Assembly (NCBI RefSeq): GCF_964194025.1
Contig: NC_134478.1
Coordinates: 41,230,001-41,294,000 of the forward strand
Reading direction: 5' to 3'
Length of the DNA stretch: 64,000 nucleotides
Origin: Convolutriloba macropyga
Lineage: Eukaryota
Shown here: positions 1-13,737 of the stretch, in pieces
How the letters are laid out: each line of letters opens with the position of its first letter
Numbering within the stretch: position 1 is the stretch's first letter
Program-made: the position numbers and the translations under genes
The notes under the pieces: generated by a model
What the model saw: only the letters and a program-made list of their open reading frames with translations
The model's database searches: none
Told to the model about the DNA's origin: nothing

Positions 1-278
1 CAAAAATGGCGAAATTTTAGTCTAAAACTCCGAAAAAAGGTGAATGAAATCAACGGAATTCACTCTATTTTCTCGAAAGTTTAAACCACGATATCTCCCT
101 GTCAAAAACGAAAATCACAAAAATCTTTTTATTTTCATATTCTACGCTGGACAAGTTTTCTAATGATACTAGTTTCAACTCTCTACGATGAATATATCGA
201 TCGGCCAAAATTGACTGAACAAAAAAAAACCCAGTTGAGTATATAGTTCCTCCCCCCTCAAGAGGGGTCGGAACAATA

Positions 279-365
279 AGGCACGTGCGTCTGTGGGGGG
301 GGGGGGGGCAAATAATATGCGCCCACTAAGCTTGGGGGGGAGGGGGGCACAAACGGAAAAGATCC
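279..365. mobile_element. Right half of the same MITE family
   Basis: GGCACGTGCGTCTG...ATATGCGCCCACTAAGC...GGCACAAACGGAAAAGATCC. Confidence 0.75.
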
Positions 366-1153
366 AAAAAAGGTTACGCCTTATATTTAAACAAAGAGGG
401 CTTGCTTATTAAGCTTCAATCAAAATAATTGAAACTTTAATCAAAAAGCCCAAAACTGAAATGCGGAAACTATTTATTGCTGAGGCATGTATGTGTTTGC
501 TTCTACATGTTTCAGTCTGTCTATTCTGGGGGTCTGACTTGTATCTGTCAATCCCAGGGTGGCCAGAGCCCGTTTAATCTGTCTCGAGGTCTGGCTCACT
601 ATCCTGCTGGGGGTCTCTTCGGTTTGGTCCAATTTAGCCACAGTCTGTTCAATATGGCACAGGGTCTGGGTTTGTTTCGTCCGGCCCAGAGTCGTGTGTC
701 GCTCTGCATGGTCTGACCCACGGTGACCAATTTCTGTTCGGTTGGACCAAATTATTGCTTGGCTCCGTTTGGTCTAACTTAGGGTGGCCAATTTATGTGC
801 ATAATTCACTTTCGGTATAGACCTCCTGTCTGCGACCCAAGGACGTCTGACCCATACCTCTTTTCGACCGAGTACCTCATCAGGGATCTCATTCTTCCAT
901 TCACCTTCTCTTTAGCCATATTTAGTTTGAAGCACTACTTTGAAGTACTGGAAGTATGTACTTTGAAGCAATCACATTTACTCTTGGCTAAACTGATAAA
1001 AGGTCGTAAAAAATTAAAATCTACGTAAAGGTAATGAAATAAACAAGGAGAAAGGCGTTGTAATGTATTTGACCTTACTGATGCGCAACTGTTTTCAACG
1101 TTATCAACTATTATTGGACATATATACTTTCAAGCATCAAACATCACTGGTAC

Positions 1154-1374: not shown

Positions 1375-2612
1375 CTTACGTTGCCCGGTTTTATTCCTCA
1401 GAGTTTTATGCTAGACAAATTTTGTTGGCACGTCAAGCGTCGCATTTTTTGCTGAAATTTATATCAGTTTATATCATTTCTGTTCTTACTTTAGTATCAA
1501 AGACATCATACAAGCGGCGTTTATCTTTGACAAATATTTAAAAATTGTTGAATCTAAGCTTGTAAGGGAGAGGAAAAACCTCAGCTTGAAAAAGGCGTAT
1601 GAGGGAAATGACAAATCATTTCCAATGTTTGCTCACTTTTATCCACTTTTTATTGCGATAGAAACTAACATAACTACAGAAAGTCAAGTGAAAAAAAATA
1701 AAACAACAATAATAAAAAACCCGCATATAAATTTCTTTTCATAACTAAGGAAAAATTTTGAAAATTAAACCAATTTTGAGCAGTAAATAACGTGTTACTA
1801 TGTCTTGTACTCAAATATTTTTGAGCGGCAACTAAATTGTTAGTGTGTCTTGAATTAAAAATTATTTTTGATCTGTGAGTTCTTGGTTTTTGCATCTTGT
1901 ATTTAAAATTACTTAAAATACAAGTTCACTTCAACGGGTGAGTAGTATCACGAAAACTGCTCTGCATAAAGAGATCCCGTATAGGGTGATCCGTAGTAAA
2001 CCCAATCTAATTTGATATCGAAAAACTATTAAAAAAGCTTAACAATTATTTAATGATCTCGAAAGGTAGTAATAAAGCGGATATACAATAACGAAAGCGA
2101 ATGGCAAAAATGTATTATGCAGACATATTTTGAACCGCTGAAACTGTGATGTGTAGAGCTTCCCGTATCATAAGCGGTAAGAAGGGTTTTTGTTAGATAT
2201 TACTGGTTTATACAAATAACCTTCCGATATTATCTTAAATTTCGTATCTGCATATCCTTTCATGAGTGTTTGTTTCCGTTCGAAAGATTCAACCGAATAC
2301 CTTTGGATTATAACAAATTCGGAATTAACACTTTAGACAACTCTAAATGTATTAATGGTATTAATACAATTTTTTATTCTTCGGACGAAATAATAACTTC
2401 AACATTCATGAGAAGTTTTTTGTTTTTTCCTCGCCGCATTTGTTTTTTTTTTGTTTTCATCAACCAGCCGCTTATTCACCGCATTTCGTACATTTTTTAG
2501 CTGTGAATAGACCTGAAACATCGGATTTGCGTGTCGGGTGTTTTACATTTAAAACCAGTGCCATAAAATAGCTTGGAAAATTAAGTGGATTCGAGGAATA
2601 AAACAGAGCTGC

Positions 2613-2837
2613 CTGAATGTTATATATTTGTGCAGATCGAATTTGTCAGCATATTCTTTCAGATAGTTCAGCAAGTATGGTCTGTCCGGATAGAACGGAA
2701 ATCCAGTGACGTTGGAGACATCCAGCGGGAAGAGAAGCTCTGGCAACTCGATCAGCTGTTTGGCCCCATTGCTGATGAGGTTGTGGTACATGCCAGAGTG
2801 CACTTCAATCCCGTCCTCTTCTATGCCTTCCACGCCC
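2613..2837 (-). CDS. FMO-like, coding exon 2
   Basis: Acceptor TTTTTCCAG at 2838. Encodes VHSGMYHNLISNGAKQLIELPE...YLKEYADKFDLHKYITF, typical of FMOs. The best donor is a GC at 2612. Confidence 0.85.
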
Positions 2838-3312
2838 CTGGAAAAATTGGTTCTTCTACATATCGAATGGAAAAAAGAATGAGATTTTTTTGAGCTGATA
2901 AAAACTCTTCAATATAAGTTTTCATTCAAAAGTTCGGGTCGAGGTTCCACAGGGAAAAATTTTACACTAGTGGTCAATTCTTACAAGACGTGTGGTTATT
3001 TTTTGTAATATTTGTGGTTTTCAGAGTGATTTTTCAGCGTTTTACTCGACCAAAAATTTAAATCTTGAAAAAACTAACTGCTAGCCCGGTAAAAATTGTA
3101 CGCAGGCTGTTAAATAAATACCACCGGATCTGTTCTGTTCCCCCTACCCTCATGCTTTGTGAGCACAAAAACTTCACGACACCCAGGCCTACGCACTATT
3201 ATTTAGATAGTATCGCGCAATATAAAAATACACAAATCTTAATTGGGGGGCATACGAAACATTGCGGGCCGAAACAGAATAGATCCCAATATTTAAAACG
3301 AGTACAAAAATG

Positions 3313-3464
3313 GGATATTTTCCGTTTGTGCCCCCAAGTACTTTATGCGCCCCCAGTTACAGAGCACGTGCCATTACACAGTAAAAATTTGGCACGTGCG
3401 TCTGGGGGGTGCAAACAATATGCGCCCACTAAGCTGGGGGGGGGGGCACAAACGGACAAGATCC
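3313..3464. mobile_element. ~152-bp MITE with GG...CC TIRs and 8-bp TSD (Merlin- or hAT-like)
   Basis: TIRs GGATATTTTCCGTTTGTGCCCC / GGGGCACAAACGGACAAGATCC. Perfect CAAAAATG duplication at 3305-3312 and 3465-3472. Confidence 0.85.
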
Positions 3465-3489
3465 CAAAAATGATAAAATGATTGGGCCA

Positions 3490-6377
3490 ACTGTTTGGCA
3501 TACATCGAAAACAAGGAGGCTCTGAAACGTGCGTTTGCATATAAAGTTCCGAACCCGATCATCCACATTTTTGTCTACTTAAATGTCTAACAAATGAGGA
3601 AGAGAAAGAAACTTTTCAAAAATACATATCCTGTTCGAAATCAATTGGTTAATGAGTAAAAAAAAAGGTTTCAATAAAAAGGTTTCAAACAACCAAATGA
3701 AAAATATAAAGCCGCATTAGAGAGCCAATGGTAACCACTATTAATAAGACTACCGGAAAAAAACAACAAAACAATAAAAACATTAGTTACGGCCATATTC
3801 AAAACATATTTTTTAGAAATCAGTCAAAATGGCGTCTGATAAGACCAGACGAAAGTCTTATTAACTTACAAAATAATATCAAAAGATAAAGAAAAGAGCA
3901 TCAGAAAAAGAATAACTTGTGCATCTCCAGAAGTTATATAAGACAGGTCATCCATGAGACTAGGTAACAAATGGACGAAAAAGGCGAAATTTGAAATTAT
4001 GTTTACATGACTGAATGAAATTAAATTCGAAGTAAACAAAAGCAATAGCTATCACCTGAAAAATTTTGATAAATTTTTTTACCATGAGAACTCATTGAGA
4101 ATTATCAATGTCCACAATACGCCATAACCCTACAAAAAAGCGACAAACATGCAAAAATCAAAAAGTCACTTTTATTTTGAAAGCCATAACTTTTATTTTG
4201 AAAGCCATTGCGAATTATTATTAATGTGGTAATTGGGCAACAAATTTTTTTAAAAATAAAAAATTGTCAAATATCCAAAAATTAAAATTCCTTTGTGAAA
4301 ACTCAAAGAATCAGAGCCATAAAACCGTAATCAAAAAATGATAAATTTTTTTTGTCCAGACAGATGATGCAACTTCTGTTTAATGCAATTATCCTAAAAT
4401 TCTAAAATTGGACAGAAATAAGATTTAAAAGGGCAAAGTTCAAAAATCACTGCTGATTCCAGCTTTCGTTTAGGTCTCCACGGCGACTTTTAATAAATAA
4501 AGTCTAAATAGCATGAGAACAAGAAATCAAAAGAAAAAAAAACATCAGAAAAAAACTTGTACATCTCCAGAACACATATGTGACAGGTCCATAATGAGAC
4601 TGGGTAACAATTTAACAACAAGTGTGAAATTTGAAAACAAGTTTACATGACCGAATACAAATAAATATGAAATAAATAAAAACAATAGCTATCACCTGAA
4701 AATATTTGAAAGGTTCTTTTGCCACAGAAAGTCTATGAGACATATCAAAATCCACAATGCGTCATAACACTACAAAGAGGCGAAAAATATGCAAAAACAA
4801 AAAAAAAGATAAACTCTCAGATTAAAAACGCTATTGAAGCCGTTAGAAAAAAAGAGATATCCATTAAAACGGTTATATATGTTCAACCACTTTCGTTGTG
4901 AAAGCCATTGCGAAACGTTATTAATGTTGTAATTGGAAAACAAAATTGAAAACAAATTAAAAAGAGACAATTTTCCAGAAAACAACAACATTTTGTGAAA
5001 ATTCGAAAAATCAAACCCATAAAACCGTTAATGAAAAAACGATAAAAAACCAATTTGTTTAGACAGATGATGCAGTCTCTGTTTACTACAACCATGCTAC
5101 AATTTGACAAAAACAAGATTTAAAATGGCAAAGTTAAAAAACCAACGGTTTTTTAAATTAAATAACCAATAGAATTTTAACAAATCTAAACTAGGTGAAA
5201 TCAAATGTCATTTCATAGAAACCCAGGAGACTAAGTCTTCAGACTACAAAATAACAATGAATGCAGGCAGAACTAAAAATTCCACAAACAGTTTTACAAA
5301 AACACGAATGTATAGGCATTAAAAGCAGAAGTTATCAATTGGAAAGTTTACGACAGTTCAATAGGGTTACGTTTGAACACCAATAGGCCCTCTTTTTAGA
5401 GGAATCGGCATAAGGAAAACAAAAAATTGCAATAGGCAATGTCCAGTGTAAAGAACTCAAAAACATTTTCATGAAGCCACATTGAGTAAGAGCCATAAAA
5501 GACTCACCTGCAACATAAAATATTTGGGTCGCATTTAAACTGCAATAGGCCTTCTTTTTAGAGGAATACCCGACATGGAAAAAATTATAACAGGCGAGGA
5601 CCAATGTAAGAAATTAAAAACATTTTTATGAAGTCACATTGAGTCGGGGCCATAAAACCACCATCTGCAACATAAAATATTAATGGATTAAAAATTGCTT
5701 GAAGAAAGTTGAATTATGAAGTAGATGGGATTCATCACTAATGACACAAAGTTACAGGCTGTCAAAAAGAAGAACCAAAGGTGCAGAGTTTAAAGTTCGA
5801 TCATTTTTTTTAAATATTTCAATGCACTAATTCCATTAGCTGTCATCTGAAATCAATGAAATCGCTCAACTGTGACTCCAGATTTCGCTTAGGTTTCCAC
5901 TGAGACTTTTAGTGCCCCTGAAAATGTAATACGACTTCAAAAGAACGACTGAGAAACCAATTATATAAAACAAAACAAGAAAAAAAACTGAGAAACCAAT
6001 TATACTTTGTGAGAAAAATTTGAGATCAGATTTCTGGATCACACGAGTCAGCAACTCACCTATGTGATTATAAGCAAAACCAATAGAATCATTGACAAAA
6101 AATTGAGAGAATTTCGGCAAAATTGATGAAAAATTGTGAAAAATTACAAATTTTTTATTTAGAAAACAAGAATTTCGAAAATAAAATCTTTCTAATTCTA
6201 TGTTCTATGTTGTATGAGCTCTTTTTATTGATACCCCTCACAACACTCTACGATGAATTCATCATTTGGGCAAAATTGATTATATGACTGAACCAAATTG
6301 ATGAATGTATCGATGAATTGACCGAAAAAAAAACAGTTGAGCATATAGTACCTCCCCCACTAATAGGCCGGAACAAT
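3490..6377 (-). repeat. ~2.9-kb non-coding interspersed repeat inside FMO intron 1
   Basis: Both ends match the reverse complement of 14387-17330 (e.g. terminal ...CAGTTGAGCATATAGTACCTCCCCCAC...GGAACAAT). The same terminus occurs at 1-277. Internal duplications are visible (3890-4480 vs 4540-5150). Confidence 0.6.
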
Positions 6378-7799
6378 AAAGGCCTTCTATTTTATAACCT
6401 GCTCAAAAAATGATCAAATGTTAATCATCTTTAGTTCAGTTTTCGTACGCAGATGAAACAACTTCAACCTTTTTAGACAAGTACCGCCAAAACATAACAC
6501 AAAAAAAAACTTATGGCAATTTCTTGTCTATTCGATTTCAAACAAAAATTGTTTATGGAAGAAACGACACACAAATCAAAACATTTAGCGTAGAGCAACT
6601 AAACTCTGTCATTGTAATACTAATTTTAATGGAGAGACATAAAAAACACTGGGGGAGAGAAAATTGATCCAAACTACCTCTTGAACGCAATTGCTTTCAG
6701 TCCAATTCTTAGGTTCACCTCTTAAAAAATCTGAAGTTAAGAAACCGTTTGAAATTTCATTTATCTGGTCGGTTGTATGCATCCATATTTGATCAATTCT
6801 CGTTGCAACAACAACAAAAGTTGCATAACTTAAAGTTGACATAACTTTTTATAACTACCCGTTGGCATTCGAAAAGTGGCTGGAATTAAGTGGCGGAAAA
6901 ACCTTCTAATTAGCTGCAAGGTGGCATAAGTTATGCAACTGTAATCTAAACGAAAATTGATTAAAAATAGCATCACACGGCTAATTGCCCTATTGAATTT
7001 AATCAAGCAATCGGCGTTGCCTTAAAATCTGATAACCTCTCAATGGAGATAACAACTGTGAGTTAATGTTCATTTTTTGCTCAATTTGACCTCTGCTTAG
7101 TTGAGATTTAATTTCTAACATTTTCTTTCAATGCTTTACGCTATCTTTTCTGCCATTTCAATGACTAGAAAACTCACTTCAACCTTTCGGACAAGATTTG
7201 AGTTATCAGTTCATCACTTTCTGGTATGTTGCCGCAAAAACGGGGGGAAGCTCATTCAACAGCGTCACCAGTTAATATAACGCTAATGTTGATCTGGTTT
7301 GCCAATAATGATAATGTAACTCTCTGTTCACAATATTGACTATCCCAAAAAACCTACTGTTGCGTTATGGACTTTCGCCAGCTGAAGAAAAACGTTTTGC
7401 TCTAAATACAAAAAGTTAATTTCTCTAGAGAGAATAAGAATAGATAACAAAGATAATAGAGATTTACTGGAGGAGTCTATTTAATAGATCAATGTCCTGA
7501 ATCGACGCAGGAATGCAAGTGACGCGAAAAGAGCAGGTACTTATACTCGGCAGCAAGGAAGCCAATCGAAAATTGAGTCTACTGTTACATTGTGTTTAAT
7601 GGTAGAATAATAGTGTCTATCTACTTACCGCTGATAGGATAAACAAAGCAATAGACAGCAGCTATTAATTTTACCAACTTAATAATTGAAATTCCCATTA
7701 TTTATTCCAAAATTGTCACATTAGTTGTACAGATGAGAGAAATATTCATACTTTCCAAGATTTGGATTTTGATTTTAAACTTATGCTCTTTTACTTGAA

Positions 7800-8720
7800 A
7801 CCCCAATTAGACTTGAGCTCACTGCGTAGAGTCTGCTCCCATCAAAATTGTTTCTGAATTTCTCCACCTTCGATGCGGATGAGATTTTCGTGAAGAGGTC
7901 TGCTAACATTTTTGCAGCTGGAACGTAGTGAACTGAGAAAGACCCATCCTACGTCTTTGTCCCGACAGAAGTGAATTTTTGTCTCGATGTGTTTTCACCT
8001 CTTGTGCTTGACTGGATTTTGGAACAGTTTAATACAACTCTGGTTATCTTCCCCAATTACTATTCGGTGTTTCTGTTGGATACCAAAGTCCGCTAGCTGT
8101 TTCATGTAAAGTGCTTTGTGAAATGGTGATTTCCTACCCTGATACAATCCCTCTGATGACAAGAGAGCAGCTATGGCCTGCTTCTTGAAAGCCCTGCCGA
8201 TTCAAAAGGCGCCTTAATTGCTTTCCCCGCTAGATCGCAGGTAGACGTTTTTGTGTACCGTAAGTGTTCAGAAGGTAGCCGCACGTAAGTGTTCAGCATT
8301 TTCAACCTTGAAGATAACTGAAGAGTCACTTTCCGCATGTCCATGTTTTTTGTTTTAGGCGCTTTCTATTTTCTGCACAGAATGATGACTGTGAACATGA
8401 TTTCTGGCCTCGTCTATTCTCCACTTTTTCGTCCCCCTTCTGTGCTGCCTGAAGTTTCAAAATCAAGTCAACTGGAGTCCTTGAGGATTTGCATAAATCC
8501 ATTTGAAACCGCTCAAGCATTGTCTCTATGTTGCATTGTCTGATTCTGAGGCCAAGAAACCAGTGTAGTCTCCCTCTGCCTTCCATGCGAAATGTTGCCT
8601 ATAAAACTTTCTTGTCGTCCATCGGAGATCACTGTCATGCTTCCAGATGTTTCTATGATGTCGTTAACCTAGACCCGGCGACTTCCACTTATACATCCCG
8701 GTCAACCAAGTAACTCACTG
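7800..8720 (-). pseudogene. Degraded Ty1/Copia RT-RNase H fragment in FMO intron 1
   Basis: V*VNDII (decayed xVDD), GRLHWFLGLRIRQ...CKSSRTP, and IVIGEDNQSCIKLFQNPVKHKR*KHIETKIHF (Copia RNase H). Confidence 0.8.
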
Positions 8721-9367
8721 CTTTCTTTCCCGGAAATCCCAGTAGTTGTATCAGGAATTTTTCATTAGCTGCTAAAAATGAAATTTCTTTGTGGATACCA
8801 CTATTTCTCCAGCTGGAAATCAGGGAAATTTAGCAGGTATGTCCCCGTGAAAAACAAACGCAAAAGCGATATACTGAATTTCTTGTTGTTACTTAAGAAA
8901 CCCCGTTATTTTTGACGAAAGCTTGTATCTCTGGTAAAAGTTCCCAGTTATTAGATCGCGTGAATTATTTTAGCTTCTTCGAGACCTGCTCTTTTATCTC
9001 TAATTTCGTCTTTTTTTCCATAACTTCTGATTTGTGGTTATCCGAAAACAAACCAACTAGGTGACTTATTTAAGTTGTATTCGACATAGCACAGGACGAG
9101 GTGCCAGGCCGAATTGGCTTATGACTACTCAATCTTGCGAAAAATTGTGAATTTTTCGCAAGAAGTGGTTTTGAGCACCCTTGAGCCTGGTCAGTGTCGG
9201 ATTTGACATGGAATATAACGTGCGTAAAATACACGTTAAGCTTTGAGAATAAGTTTCCTAGATTAAATTTTTAAATGATTATATTTTTGCAAATATACGG
9301 GAGTGGTAAAAGATTTATTTTGTGATCCAAACAAAAACATCCAAAGCATTTTAGTGGCTTTTCTAAC

Positions 9368-9513
9368 GTGAAGTTCCAAACTCCCCCAACTGAATCGTAT
9401 CTCTCGTAGCACACCACCTCATAATTGTCCTGATCCAGATTGCACTGTAGGGCTCTCAAAGTTGTCAGTCCAGATGGACCAGCTCCAATAACACACACTC
9501 GTTGTTTTCTCAT
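9368..9513 (-). CDS. Flavin-containing monooxygenase (FMO-like), coding exon 1
   Basis: MRKQRVCVIGAGPSGL (FAD-binding GxGxxG) ... YERYDSVGGVWNFT. GT donor (AC|GTTAGA) at 9367, phase 2, matching the exon 2 acceptor. Confidence 0.88.
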
Positions 9514-13104: not shown

Positions 13105-13737
13105 TCACACTACAAGTCTATAAGTCACATATCTTCCAGCAGTTTCAGACTTCCTAATAATTCTCACAACATCGCCCCTCTGGAGTCCAAAGTACCTCGC
13201 GACCGGATCCCCCATCTGGATTCTGGGTAGCTGATGATCCTTCAGTTTGTACCTCGTCAACAGTTCTTTCTTTTCCTCGGCTGTCATCAATACATGTTCA
13301 GGCACAAGCATATGTTCAGTGATGTTAATGAGCAATTCACATTCCATAAACTGTTCAAGGGTGTATTTAGGAGCCATATCTGTCAATGCAGCTTTAGCTG
13401 ATGGAGTCATACCACCTTGAACAATGATGATTGCACGTGTTATACTTTCTTCTTGCATCCTTTGACAATAATGCTTAATAGTCTTGATTCCAATCTTAGG
13501 TTCTTCAGGGAAGAAAACGAACATCTGATTTGTCGGGTCGTCGTTATGGGCAACCAATACAATGAGGTCTGATCTCGCGGGTTTTCTCTGACTCGGTGCA
13601 TTGCCAAATTTCTCGATGAACTGTTCGAGTGTTTCGTCCAATTCATCTTGTGTTACTAGGTATCCACGATCATGGCACAACTGCATGATGGTCTTGCGGA
13701 TTCTCCACAATTTGTAAGTTTCAGCTTCGTCATCCAT
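13105..13737 (-). CDS. POLR2E: DNA-directed RNA polymerases I/II/III subunit RPABC1 (RPB5), no intron in CDS
   Basis: 210 aa, [28 protein letters not shown]...DPVARYFGL...[13 protein letters not shown], readily recognisable as metazoan RPB5. Confidence 0.97.

Follow-up and report, generated by a model that had tools for sequence, protein, structure and literature searches.

Analysis of a 64,000-nt stretch of the Convolutriloba macropyga genome (hereafter the window; G000:C11:41230001-41294000, from an assembly totalling 1,175,981,408 bases) revealed an intact flavin monooxygenase (FMO) gene that carries, at a lineage-specific position, a 1238-nt intron with GC-AG borders, whose two ends can pair with each other and are single-copy in the genome. 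On balance, this intron (intron 2 of the gene) is probably a spliceosomal intron born from an insertion, in which the helix that joins the ends would be a relic of the inverted repeats of the inserted DNA and probably aids splicing.

Host gene and exon layout

The minus strand of the window contains a bacterial-type FMO gene, which the public record lists as trimethylamine monooxygenase-like. Besides the three exons and two introns listed in Table 1, four more FMO exons were located up to 24 kb past the window start, giving seven exons and six introns in total, and the matches to PF00743 coincide with the FMO exons. The public protein P0159 (424 aa) matches the window exons at 100%, and its residues 4–422 align with residues 3–420 of the bacterial Tmm structure 5ipy (E 3e-97), ungapped at the exon 2–exon 3 junction. 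The seven exons all keep an open frame, and together they follow bacterial Tmm collinearly over 419 residues. P0159 retains the FAD, FMO-identifying and NADPH motifs (GAGPSG, FPGLIIHSKQF, GAAYSAED), the second of which is the FxGxxxHxxxF motif borne by exon 3, and its product length equals that of the sister paralog P0151. By its full length, collinearity and conserved cofactor motifs, the host is a bacterial-type FMO gene of the Tmm kind. The published assembly of C. macropyga comprises 1,175.98 Mb in 15 chromosomes, and poly(A) RNA-seq exists for the species (PMC13650328).

Two further observations concern the surroundings of the gene. A G-run-rich element (GGCACGTGCGTCTG...G-run...ATATGCGCCCACTAAGCT...G-run...CACAAACGGA) occurs as two direct copies on the plus strand (window 268–370 and 3386–3470), situated in introns 3 and 1 and so bracketing exons 2 and 3 together with intron 2; it is probably a dispersed short repeat. 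At 13108–13773 on the minus strand, an intronless open frame of 222 codons reads as a complete RPB5/RPABC1-like RNA polymerase subunit; it may have arisen as a retrogene, or the gene may simply have few introns.

Table 1. Features of the FMO gene and of intron 2, in window coordinates; a slash marks a splice border, and signed numbers are positions relative to the borders of intron 2.
Feature	Position	Strand	Description
Exon 1	9368–9513	−	ATG at 9513; GAGPSG FAD motif; donor CAC/GTTAGA
Intron 1	2838–9367	−	6530 nt, GT-AG; pyrimidine-rich acceptor (tttttccag)
Exon 2	2613–2837	−	225 nt; 3' end ACA TTC AG, phase 2
Intron 2	1375–2612	−	1238 nt, GC...AG (CAG/GCAGCT ... CGTAAG/T); found in this gene alone
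5' arm of closing helix	2593–2609	−	RNA GCUCUGUUUUAUUCCUC; +4 to +20
Alternative GT donor CUG/GUUUUA	2555–2556	−	Only in-frame GT with the same acceptor; 57 nt into intron 2
Dispersed-repeat fragment	1741–2139		About 70–78% identity to the interior of a repeat family whose length is at least 2 kb; 45-nt tandem repeat at 1774–1910
Unpaired upstream AG (−38/−37)	1411–1412	−	UGA stop at 1398–1400 follows if used
3' arm of closing helix	1383–1399	−	RNA GAGGAAUAAAACCGGGC; −25 to −9; AG inside at 1397–1398
Acceptor region AACGUAAG/UA	1370–1379	−	5' splice hexamer GUAAGU overlapping the 3' splice site
Exon 3	1154–1374	−	221 nt; begins T ACA TGG; donor CAG/GTACCA

Splice borders of intron 2

On the minus strand, the borders of intron 2 read ...AAATATATAACATTCAG/GCAGCTCTGTTTTATTCCTCGA...CTCTGAGGAATAAAACCGGGCAACGTAAG/TACATGGGTC, or, with the adjoining exon bases, CAG/GCAGCTCTGTTTTATTCCTCGA ... 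GAGGAATAAAACCGGGCAACGTAAG/TAC. Aligned to bacterial Tmm, exon 2 runs up to residue 122 and exon 3 resumes at residue 124 without insertion or deletion; residue 123 (Tmm numbering) corresponds to the codon split AG/T across the intron. With GC at +1/+2 and AG at −2/−1, the junction is in frame and supported by homology. P0159 reads ...HKYITFSTWVDNVSYD... across this junction, and the borders of the public gene model are exactly GC...AG at 2612/1375, a model that may derive from protein homology alone and as such would be no independent proof of splicing. When all G...AG border pairs were enumerated within ~60 nt of the borders with the frame kept open, a collinear protein was restored only by the GC pair. 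AG is present at both junctions, and the cut can formally be shifted 1 or 2 nt to the left; among the shifted cuts, spliceosomal rules are fitted only by GC-AG.

GC donors usually offset the C at +2 by an otherwise strong consensus, AG/GCAAGT. The donor of intron 2 (CAG/GCAGCT) lacks this compensation, since positions +4 and +5 are occupied by G and C, and its complementarity to U1 is limited to −3 to +1, +3 and +6. At the other end, the pyrimidine fraction at −25 to −4 is 0.27, below that of every other intron among the 15 of the family (0.36–0.77 in the 14 control introns). Two further AGs (−38/−37 and −24/−23) lie between any plausible branch site and the true acceptor. The first of these leads into a UGA stop and must therefore be skipped, and none of the enumerated pairs using the AG at 1411/1412 gave a stop-free junction. 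The acceptor is also overlaid by a perfect GTAAGT hexamer (AAC GTAAG/T), which could have arisen by chance, be left over from the insert or serve as a binding site for U1.

Other borders, or an excision that is non-spliceosomal as in the nonconventional introns of euglenids, appear very improbable. The GT donor at 2555 (CTG/GTTTTA), joined to the same acceptor, gives an open frame without a shift; its use would add 19 residues that are seen in no homolog, an insertion at a site where none occurs from bacteria to acoels, and GUUUUA is itself a poor donor. The euglenid type of excision is, to our knowledge, not known in animals. The helix of intron 2 does begin at +4, comparable to the pairing of +4 to +6 with −8 to −6 in euglenid introns (PMC11282704), but the G at +1 and the 3' AG are kept, as the spliceosome needs.

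Pairing between the intron ends

A repeat finder detected 17-nt arms near the two ends of intron 2, complementary as DNA at 15 of 17 positions and including a perfect 12-mer (1388–1399 and 2593–2604). In the RNA, base pairs can form at 16 of the 17 positions (15 Watson-Crick pairs and one G.U), with a single U.C mismatch. The duplex between the 40-nt ends was calculated at −24.2 kcal/mol with a helix of 17–18 bp, and the closing helix was present in both the minimum-energy and the centroid folds of a 1258-nt stretch containing the whole intron. End duplexes of the control introns, all of them GT-AG (five each from this gene and its sister paralog, and four from S. roscoffensis), ranged from −2.8 to −13.3 kcal/mol. 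Intron 2 combines the end pairing of hairpin-closed non-canonical introns with their non-GT donor and their weak or absent pyrimidine tract.

The chance level of this pairing was estimated from random local segments. Duplexes of −24.2 kcal/mol or lower between 40-nt ends were found in 67 of 29,736 segments (0.23%). A perfect repeat of at least 12 nt within 30 nt of both ends was found in 12 of 195,879 segments (6e-5), a frequency at which a handful of 12-bp terminal repeats would arise by chance in a genome with, as a rough figure, 10^5 introns. A structure-first scan of the window for hairpin introns joining open reading frames recovered intron 2, together with many false positives in transposon ORFs.

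These results agree with most of the preliminary description of this DNA. It had placed an FMO intron with GC...AAG borders at 1375–2612, which is borne out by homology, reading frame and the public model; it had called the GC donor poor and the acceptor devoid of a pyrimidine tract, as the donor sequence and the lowest pyrimidine fraction among the 15 introns confirm; and its perfect 12-bp inverted repeat, said to be extendable by about four pairs, was recovered within the 17-nt arms, at 15/17 as DNA and 16/17 as RNA.

Pairing was also inspected at two other loci. In a NIPSNAP gene on C6 (L047; C6:74699167-74702388), a perfect 12-bp inverted repeat (TCCAAGGAACTG and CAGTTCCTTGGA, at 1669–1680 and 2013–2024) brackets a stop-filled interruption of ~350 nt, and its 5' arm appears to cross the exon-intron border. 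Among the GT donors checked by eye, none fitted the frame of this interruption. The helix of FMO intron 2 is unrelated to it in sequence. In a candidate GC-AG intron of UQCC1 on the same contig, the repeat finder detected no pairing at both ends.

Lineage-specific gain of intron 2

The preliminary description had named presence or absence of the intron in FMO paralogs and orthologs as a check, and intron 2 proved absent from eight paralogs, from Symsagittifera and from other relatives. In all eight paralogs of the same genome, exons 2 and 3 are contiguous and share a reading frame, and one codon occupies the site. In S. roscoffensis, a single 150-aa exon of P0160 spans the site and the intron is also absent from P0156/P0008; P0002, P0004, P0005, P0008 and P0278 (fragments or proteins) are likewise uninterrupted there, and no orthologous copy of intron 2 was recovered. 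By comparison, the remaining five introns of the gene are GT-AG; all are common to the C6 paralog and four to S. roscoffensis, including intron 1, whose position is common to both. The paralog-specific introns found in L015 and L018 are plain GT-AG introns.

In a maximum-likelihood tree, this gene (C11) and the C6 paralog P0151 were sisters (support 99/97) within the acoel clade, with branch lengths of 0.24 and 0.16, respectively. Judged by these sequence comparisons, intron 2 is a lineage-specific gain in the Convolutriloba lineage, its position created by insertion. Because the C11 and C6 genes are sisters and the C6 gene lacks the intron, the gain postdates a duplication within that lineage. 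The serine codon split by the intron reads AGT in this gene, whereas the sister paralog L014 has TCA at the site and other paralogs have AAG or CAA, so the codon changed class around the time of the gain.

The same survey showed that the bacterial-type, Tmm-like FMO family has expanded in acoels to at least 10 genes (among them loci L014–L022), some of which form a tandem cluster on C15. Tmm-like proteins of bivalves grouped with proteobacterial Tmm in the same tree (82/86), apart from the acoel clade.

Origin of the inserted DNA

A DNA search of the 1.18-Gb genome for both end segments of the intron (366 and 473 nt) returned no other copies. Searches with the whole intron and its ends likewise matched the end segments to their own locus only, and gave two weak internal matches. 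The middle of the intron holds the dispersed-repeat fragment listed in Table 1, and the copies of that family (loci L002–L010) are 93–96% alike among themselves. The divergence of the fragment (70–78% identity) relative to the mutually similar copies of the family indicates that the insert is composite and not young; no source locus survives. Many copies of this repeat occur as same-strand pairs ~6.7 kb apart, resembling the long terminal repeats of retroelements, and the 45-nt tandem repeat of the family varies in copy number. Rfam and tRNA scans of intron 2 for known RNA genes gave nothing above noise, and look-ups of P0159 and of the exon-1 ORF for a second haplotype or other assemblies gave no match.

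With one mismatch allowed, the arm pattern GCYCKGTTTTATTCCTC had 44 matches in the genome compared to 14 for the reversed control, an excess due to the internal sequence of an unrelated repeat (GCTCGGTTTTATCCCTC). One locus, L033, resembles the 5' end of the intron at 30 of 35 nt and was rejected as a relative, having no partner arm and no further similarity. The inverted repeat of intron 2 is subterminal, beginning 3 nt and stopping 8 nt inside the borders. TTCAG and GTAAG match at three of five positions, and at the junctions only AG is repeated.

Introners are families of similar introns with at least four members per genome (PMC9860276), and intron 2 belongs to no such family. The preliminary description fared less well on this subject: the introner-like identity that it proposed does not hold in the defined sense, with no similar introns and both ends single-copy in 1.18 Gb; its decayed target site duplication (TSD) TTCAG/GTAAG reduces to the 3/5 match with AG alone duplicated; and the genome search it suggested for the terminal repeat elsewhere yielded matches that are unrelated repeats or have no partner arm. 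With single-copy ends, intron 2 was rejected as an introner in that sense.

Several of these features would also suit an ordinary minor-class GC-AG intron gained in another way, for example as filler DNA at a double-strand break, with the end pairing a matter of chance or a neutral relic without effect on splicing. GC-AG is an accepted U2-type border pair, the intron ends have neither a family nor a TSD, and an old mid-intron fragment of an unrelated dispersed repeat is expected of captured genomic DNA. The end-duplex energy has a p of only ~0.002, and a 15/17 repeat in an intron of this age could persist through slow decay without selection. We nevertheless consider this origin rather unlikely, since the perfect run of at least 12 has p = 6e-5 per intron, the pairing falls together with the weakest donor and the weakest pyrimidine tract of the 15 family introns, and the inserted DNA has no source locus in the genome. 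Although intron 2 shows no hallmarks of a transposon, the helix would most simply, and most likely, derive from a decayed non-autonomous element with inverted ends, as judged by the analogous cases of Fritillaria, Amoebophrya, euglenids and introners (PMC11282704; PMC9860276).

Sequencing data and integrity of the gene

Four sequencing runs from one study, representing three samples, provided DNA-like contigs at the locus. In all three samples, contigs spanned both borders of intron 2 at 100% identity with the intron included. Neither an intron-less allele nor a spliced joint was found among the DNA-like contigs of the three samples, which also contained no variants in the helix arms. Word searches with exon 3 and P0159:50-198 recovered no transcript-derived fragments of this gene. 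In one of the three samples (run X4), the contig graph branches at window 2634/2635, 22 nt inside exon 2; the depth to the right of the branch is doubled (119 vs. ~60), with no alternative among the contigs listed on the left. This branch could represent another allele, or else a duplicate that has 2635–3285 in common with the locus and diverges beyond it.

A further alternative is that the 1238 nt are a gene-disrupting insertion, unremoved or poorly removed, in a young pseudogene or silent paralog, the public model being a homology-driven artefact. No RNA run was among the runs matching the exons, the copy may be redundant among at least 10 paralogs, its branch is longer than that of the sister (0.24 vs. 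0.16), and both donor and acceptor are weak. Set against this are the seven open exons, collinear with Tmm over 419 residues and with cofactor motifs kept, and the presence of the insertion in 3/3 samples. Moreover, the insert looks old (the fragment is ~77% identical, compared to 93–96% among the copies, and has no source copy), and a long-dead gene should show stops or frameshifts. On these grounds we regard loss of function as improbable. Because a gene broken for long should have decayed, whereas this one is open and collinear despite an old-looking insert, we infer that intron 2 is probably spliced.

Comparison with known intron systems

Insertion-born, hairpin-ended introns with off-consensus borders are a kind already known, and GC-AG is the mildest departure from the GT-AG rule. 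Introners, reported from Micromonas, Aureococcus, dinoflagellates and many aquatic eukaryotes (PMC9860276; PMC11282704), resemble intron 2 in occupying new, lineage-specific positions in once-continuous exons, in carrying inverted repeats near their ends and in having the AG of the exon edge recur at the 3' splice site; dinoflagellate introners commonly have GC donors (PMC11282704). Intron 2 differs from them in its single-copy ends, its subterminal repeat and the lack of a TSD beyond AG.

The MITE-derived introns of the tunicate Fritillaria borealis (Henriet et al., 2019, via PMC11282704; PMC13326754) are similarly species-specific odd introns with inverted repeats, alongside canonical GT-AG introns at conserved positions. 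Their removal is presumed there to proceed via the U2 spliceosome (PMC11282704; PMC13326754). Their borders are mostly AG-AC and AG-AT with TSDs, whereas intron 2, with its predicted splicing, keeps the G at +1 and the 3' AG and deviates only at +2 and in the consensus around it.

The nonconventional introns of euglenids share with intron 2 the missing pyrimidine tract, an end helix starting from +4 and a suspected MITE origin, and are of variable length (PMC11282704). They have pyrimidine/purine borders, unlike intron 2, and are excised as full-length circles, probably in a non-spliceosomal way (PMC11282704). The helix also differs in extent, with 17 bp in intron 2 compared to ~3 conserved pairs in euglenid introns.

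In the structure-dependent introns of teleosts, RNA structure replaces the need for U2AF2 (PMC4691745). That model is similar to the proposal made here, in that end pairing brings the splice sites together and can take the place of recognition of the tract (PMC4691745). The teleost arms, however, consist of (AC)n and (GT)n repeats, and the introns are GT-AG (PMC4691745), whereas the arms of intron 2 are the unique sequences GCUCUGUUUUAUUCCUC and GAGGAAUAAAACCGGGC in a GC-AG intron and so fall outside the repeat type that defines the teleost case. Our literature search found no description of such introns in acoels.

Proposed mechanism and significance

According to the favoured reading of an insertion-born spliceosomal intron, ~1.24 kb of non-coding DNA would have been inserted, in the Convolutriloba lineage, into an exon that all relatives have uninterrupted. 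The insert would be removed at CAG/GC...AAG/U, the sole border pair that restores the collinear protein. The helix of +4 to +20 with −25 to −9 would loop out ~1.2 kb and bring donor and acceptor within a few nucleotides of each other. It would also bury the decoy AG at −24/−23, with the true AG located 8 nt past the helix foot. The helix itself, single-copy today and decayed in part, is most likely a remnant of inverted ends that the inserted element once carried.

A wider proposal is put forward here as a real but tentative possibility: C. macropyga, an acoel only distantly related to tunicates, may harbour a genome-wide population of young introns derived from inverted-repeat elements, in which the donor keeps only the G at +1 (GC, GA or GG) and no pyrimidine tract is needed, as an end-clamping helix defines the splice sites. 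FMO intron 2 would then be a datable member of this population, with a helix needed for its removal.

Intron gain in animals is rare and its mechanism usually invisible, and the gain of intron 2 is cleanly bracketed. Of six introns in this gene, five are old, canonical and shared, and it is the remaining one that has a weak GC donor, no pyrimidine tract and clamped ends. If RNA confirms its removal, the gene would constitute a test bed with five internal control introns, and could show whether end pairing replaces splice-site consensus in a bilaterian.
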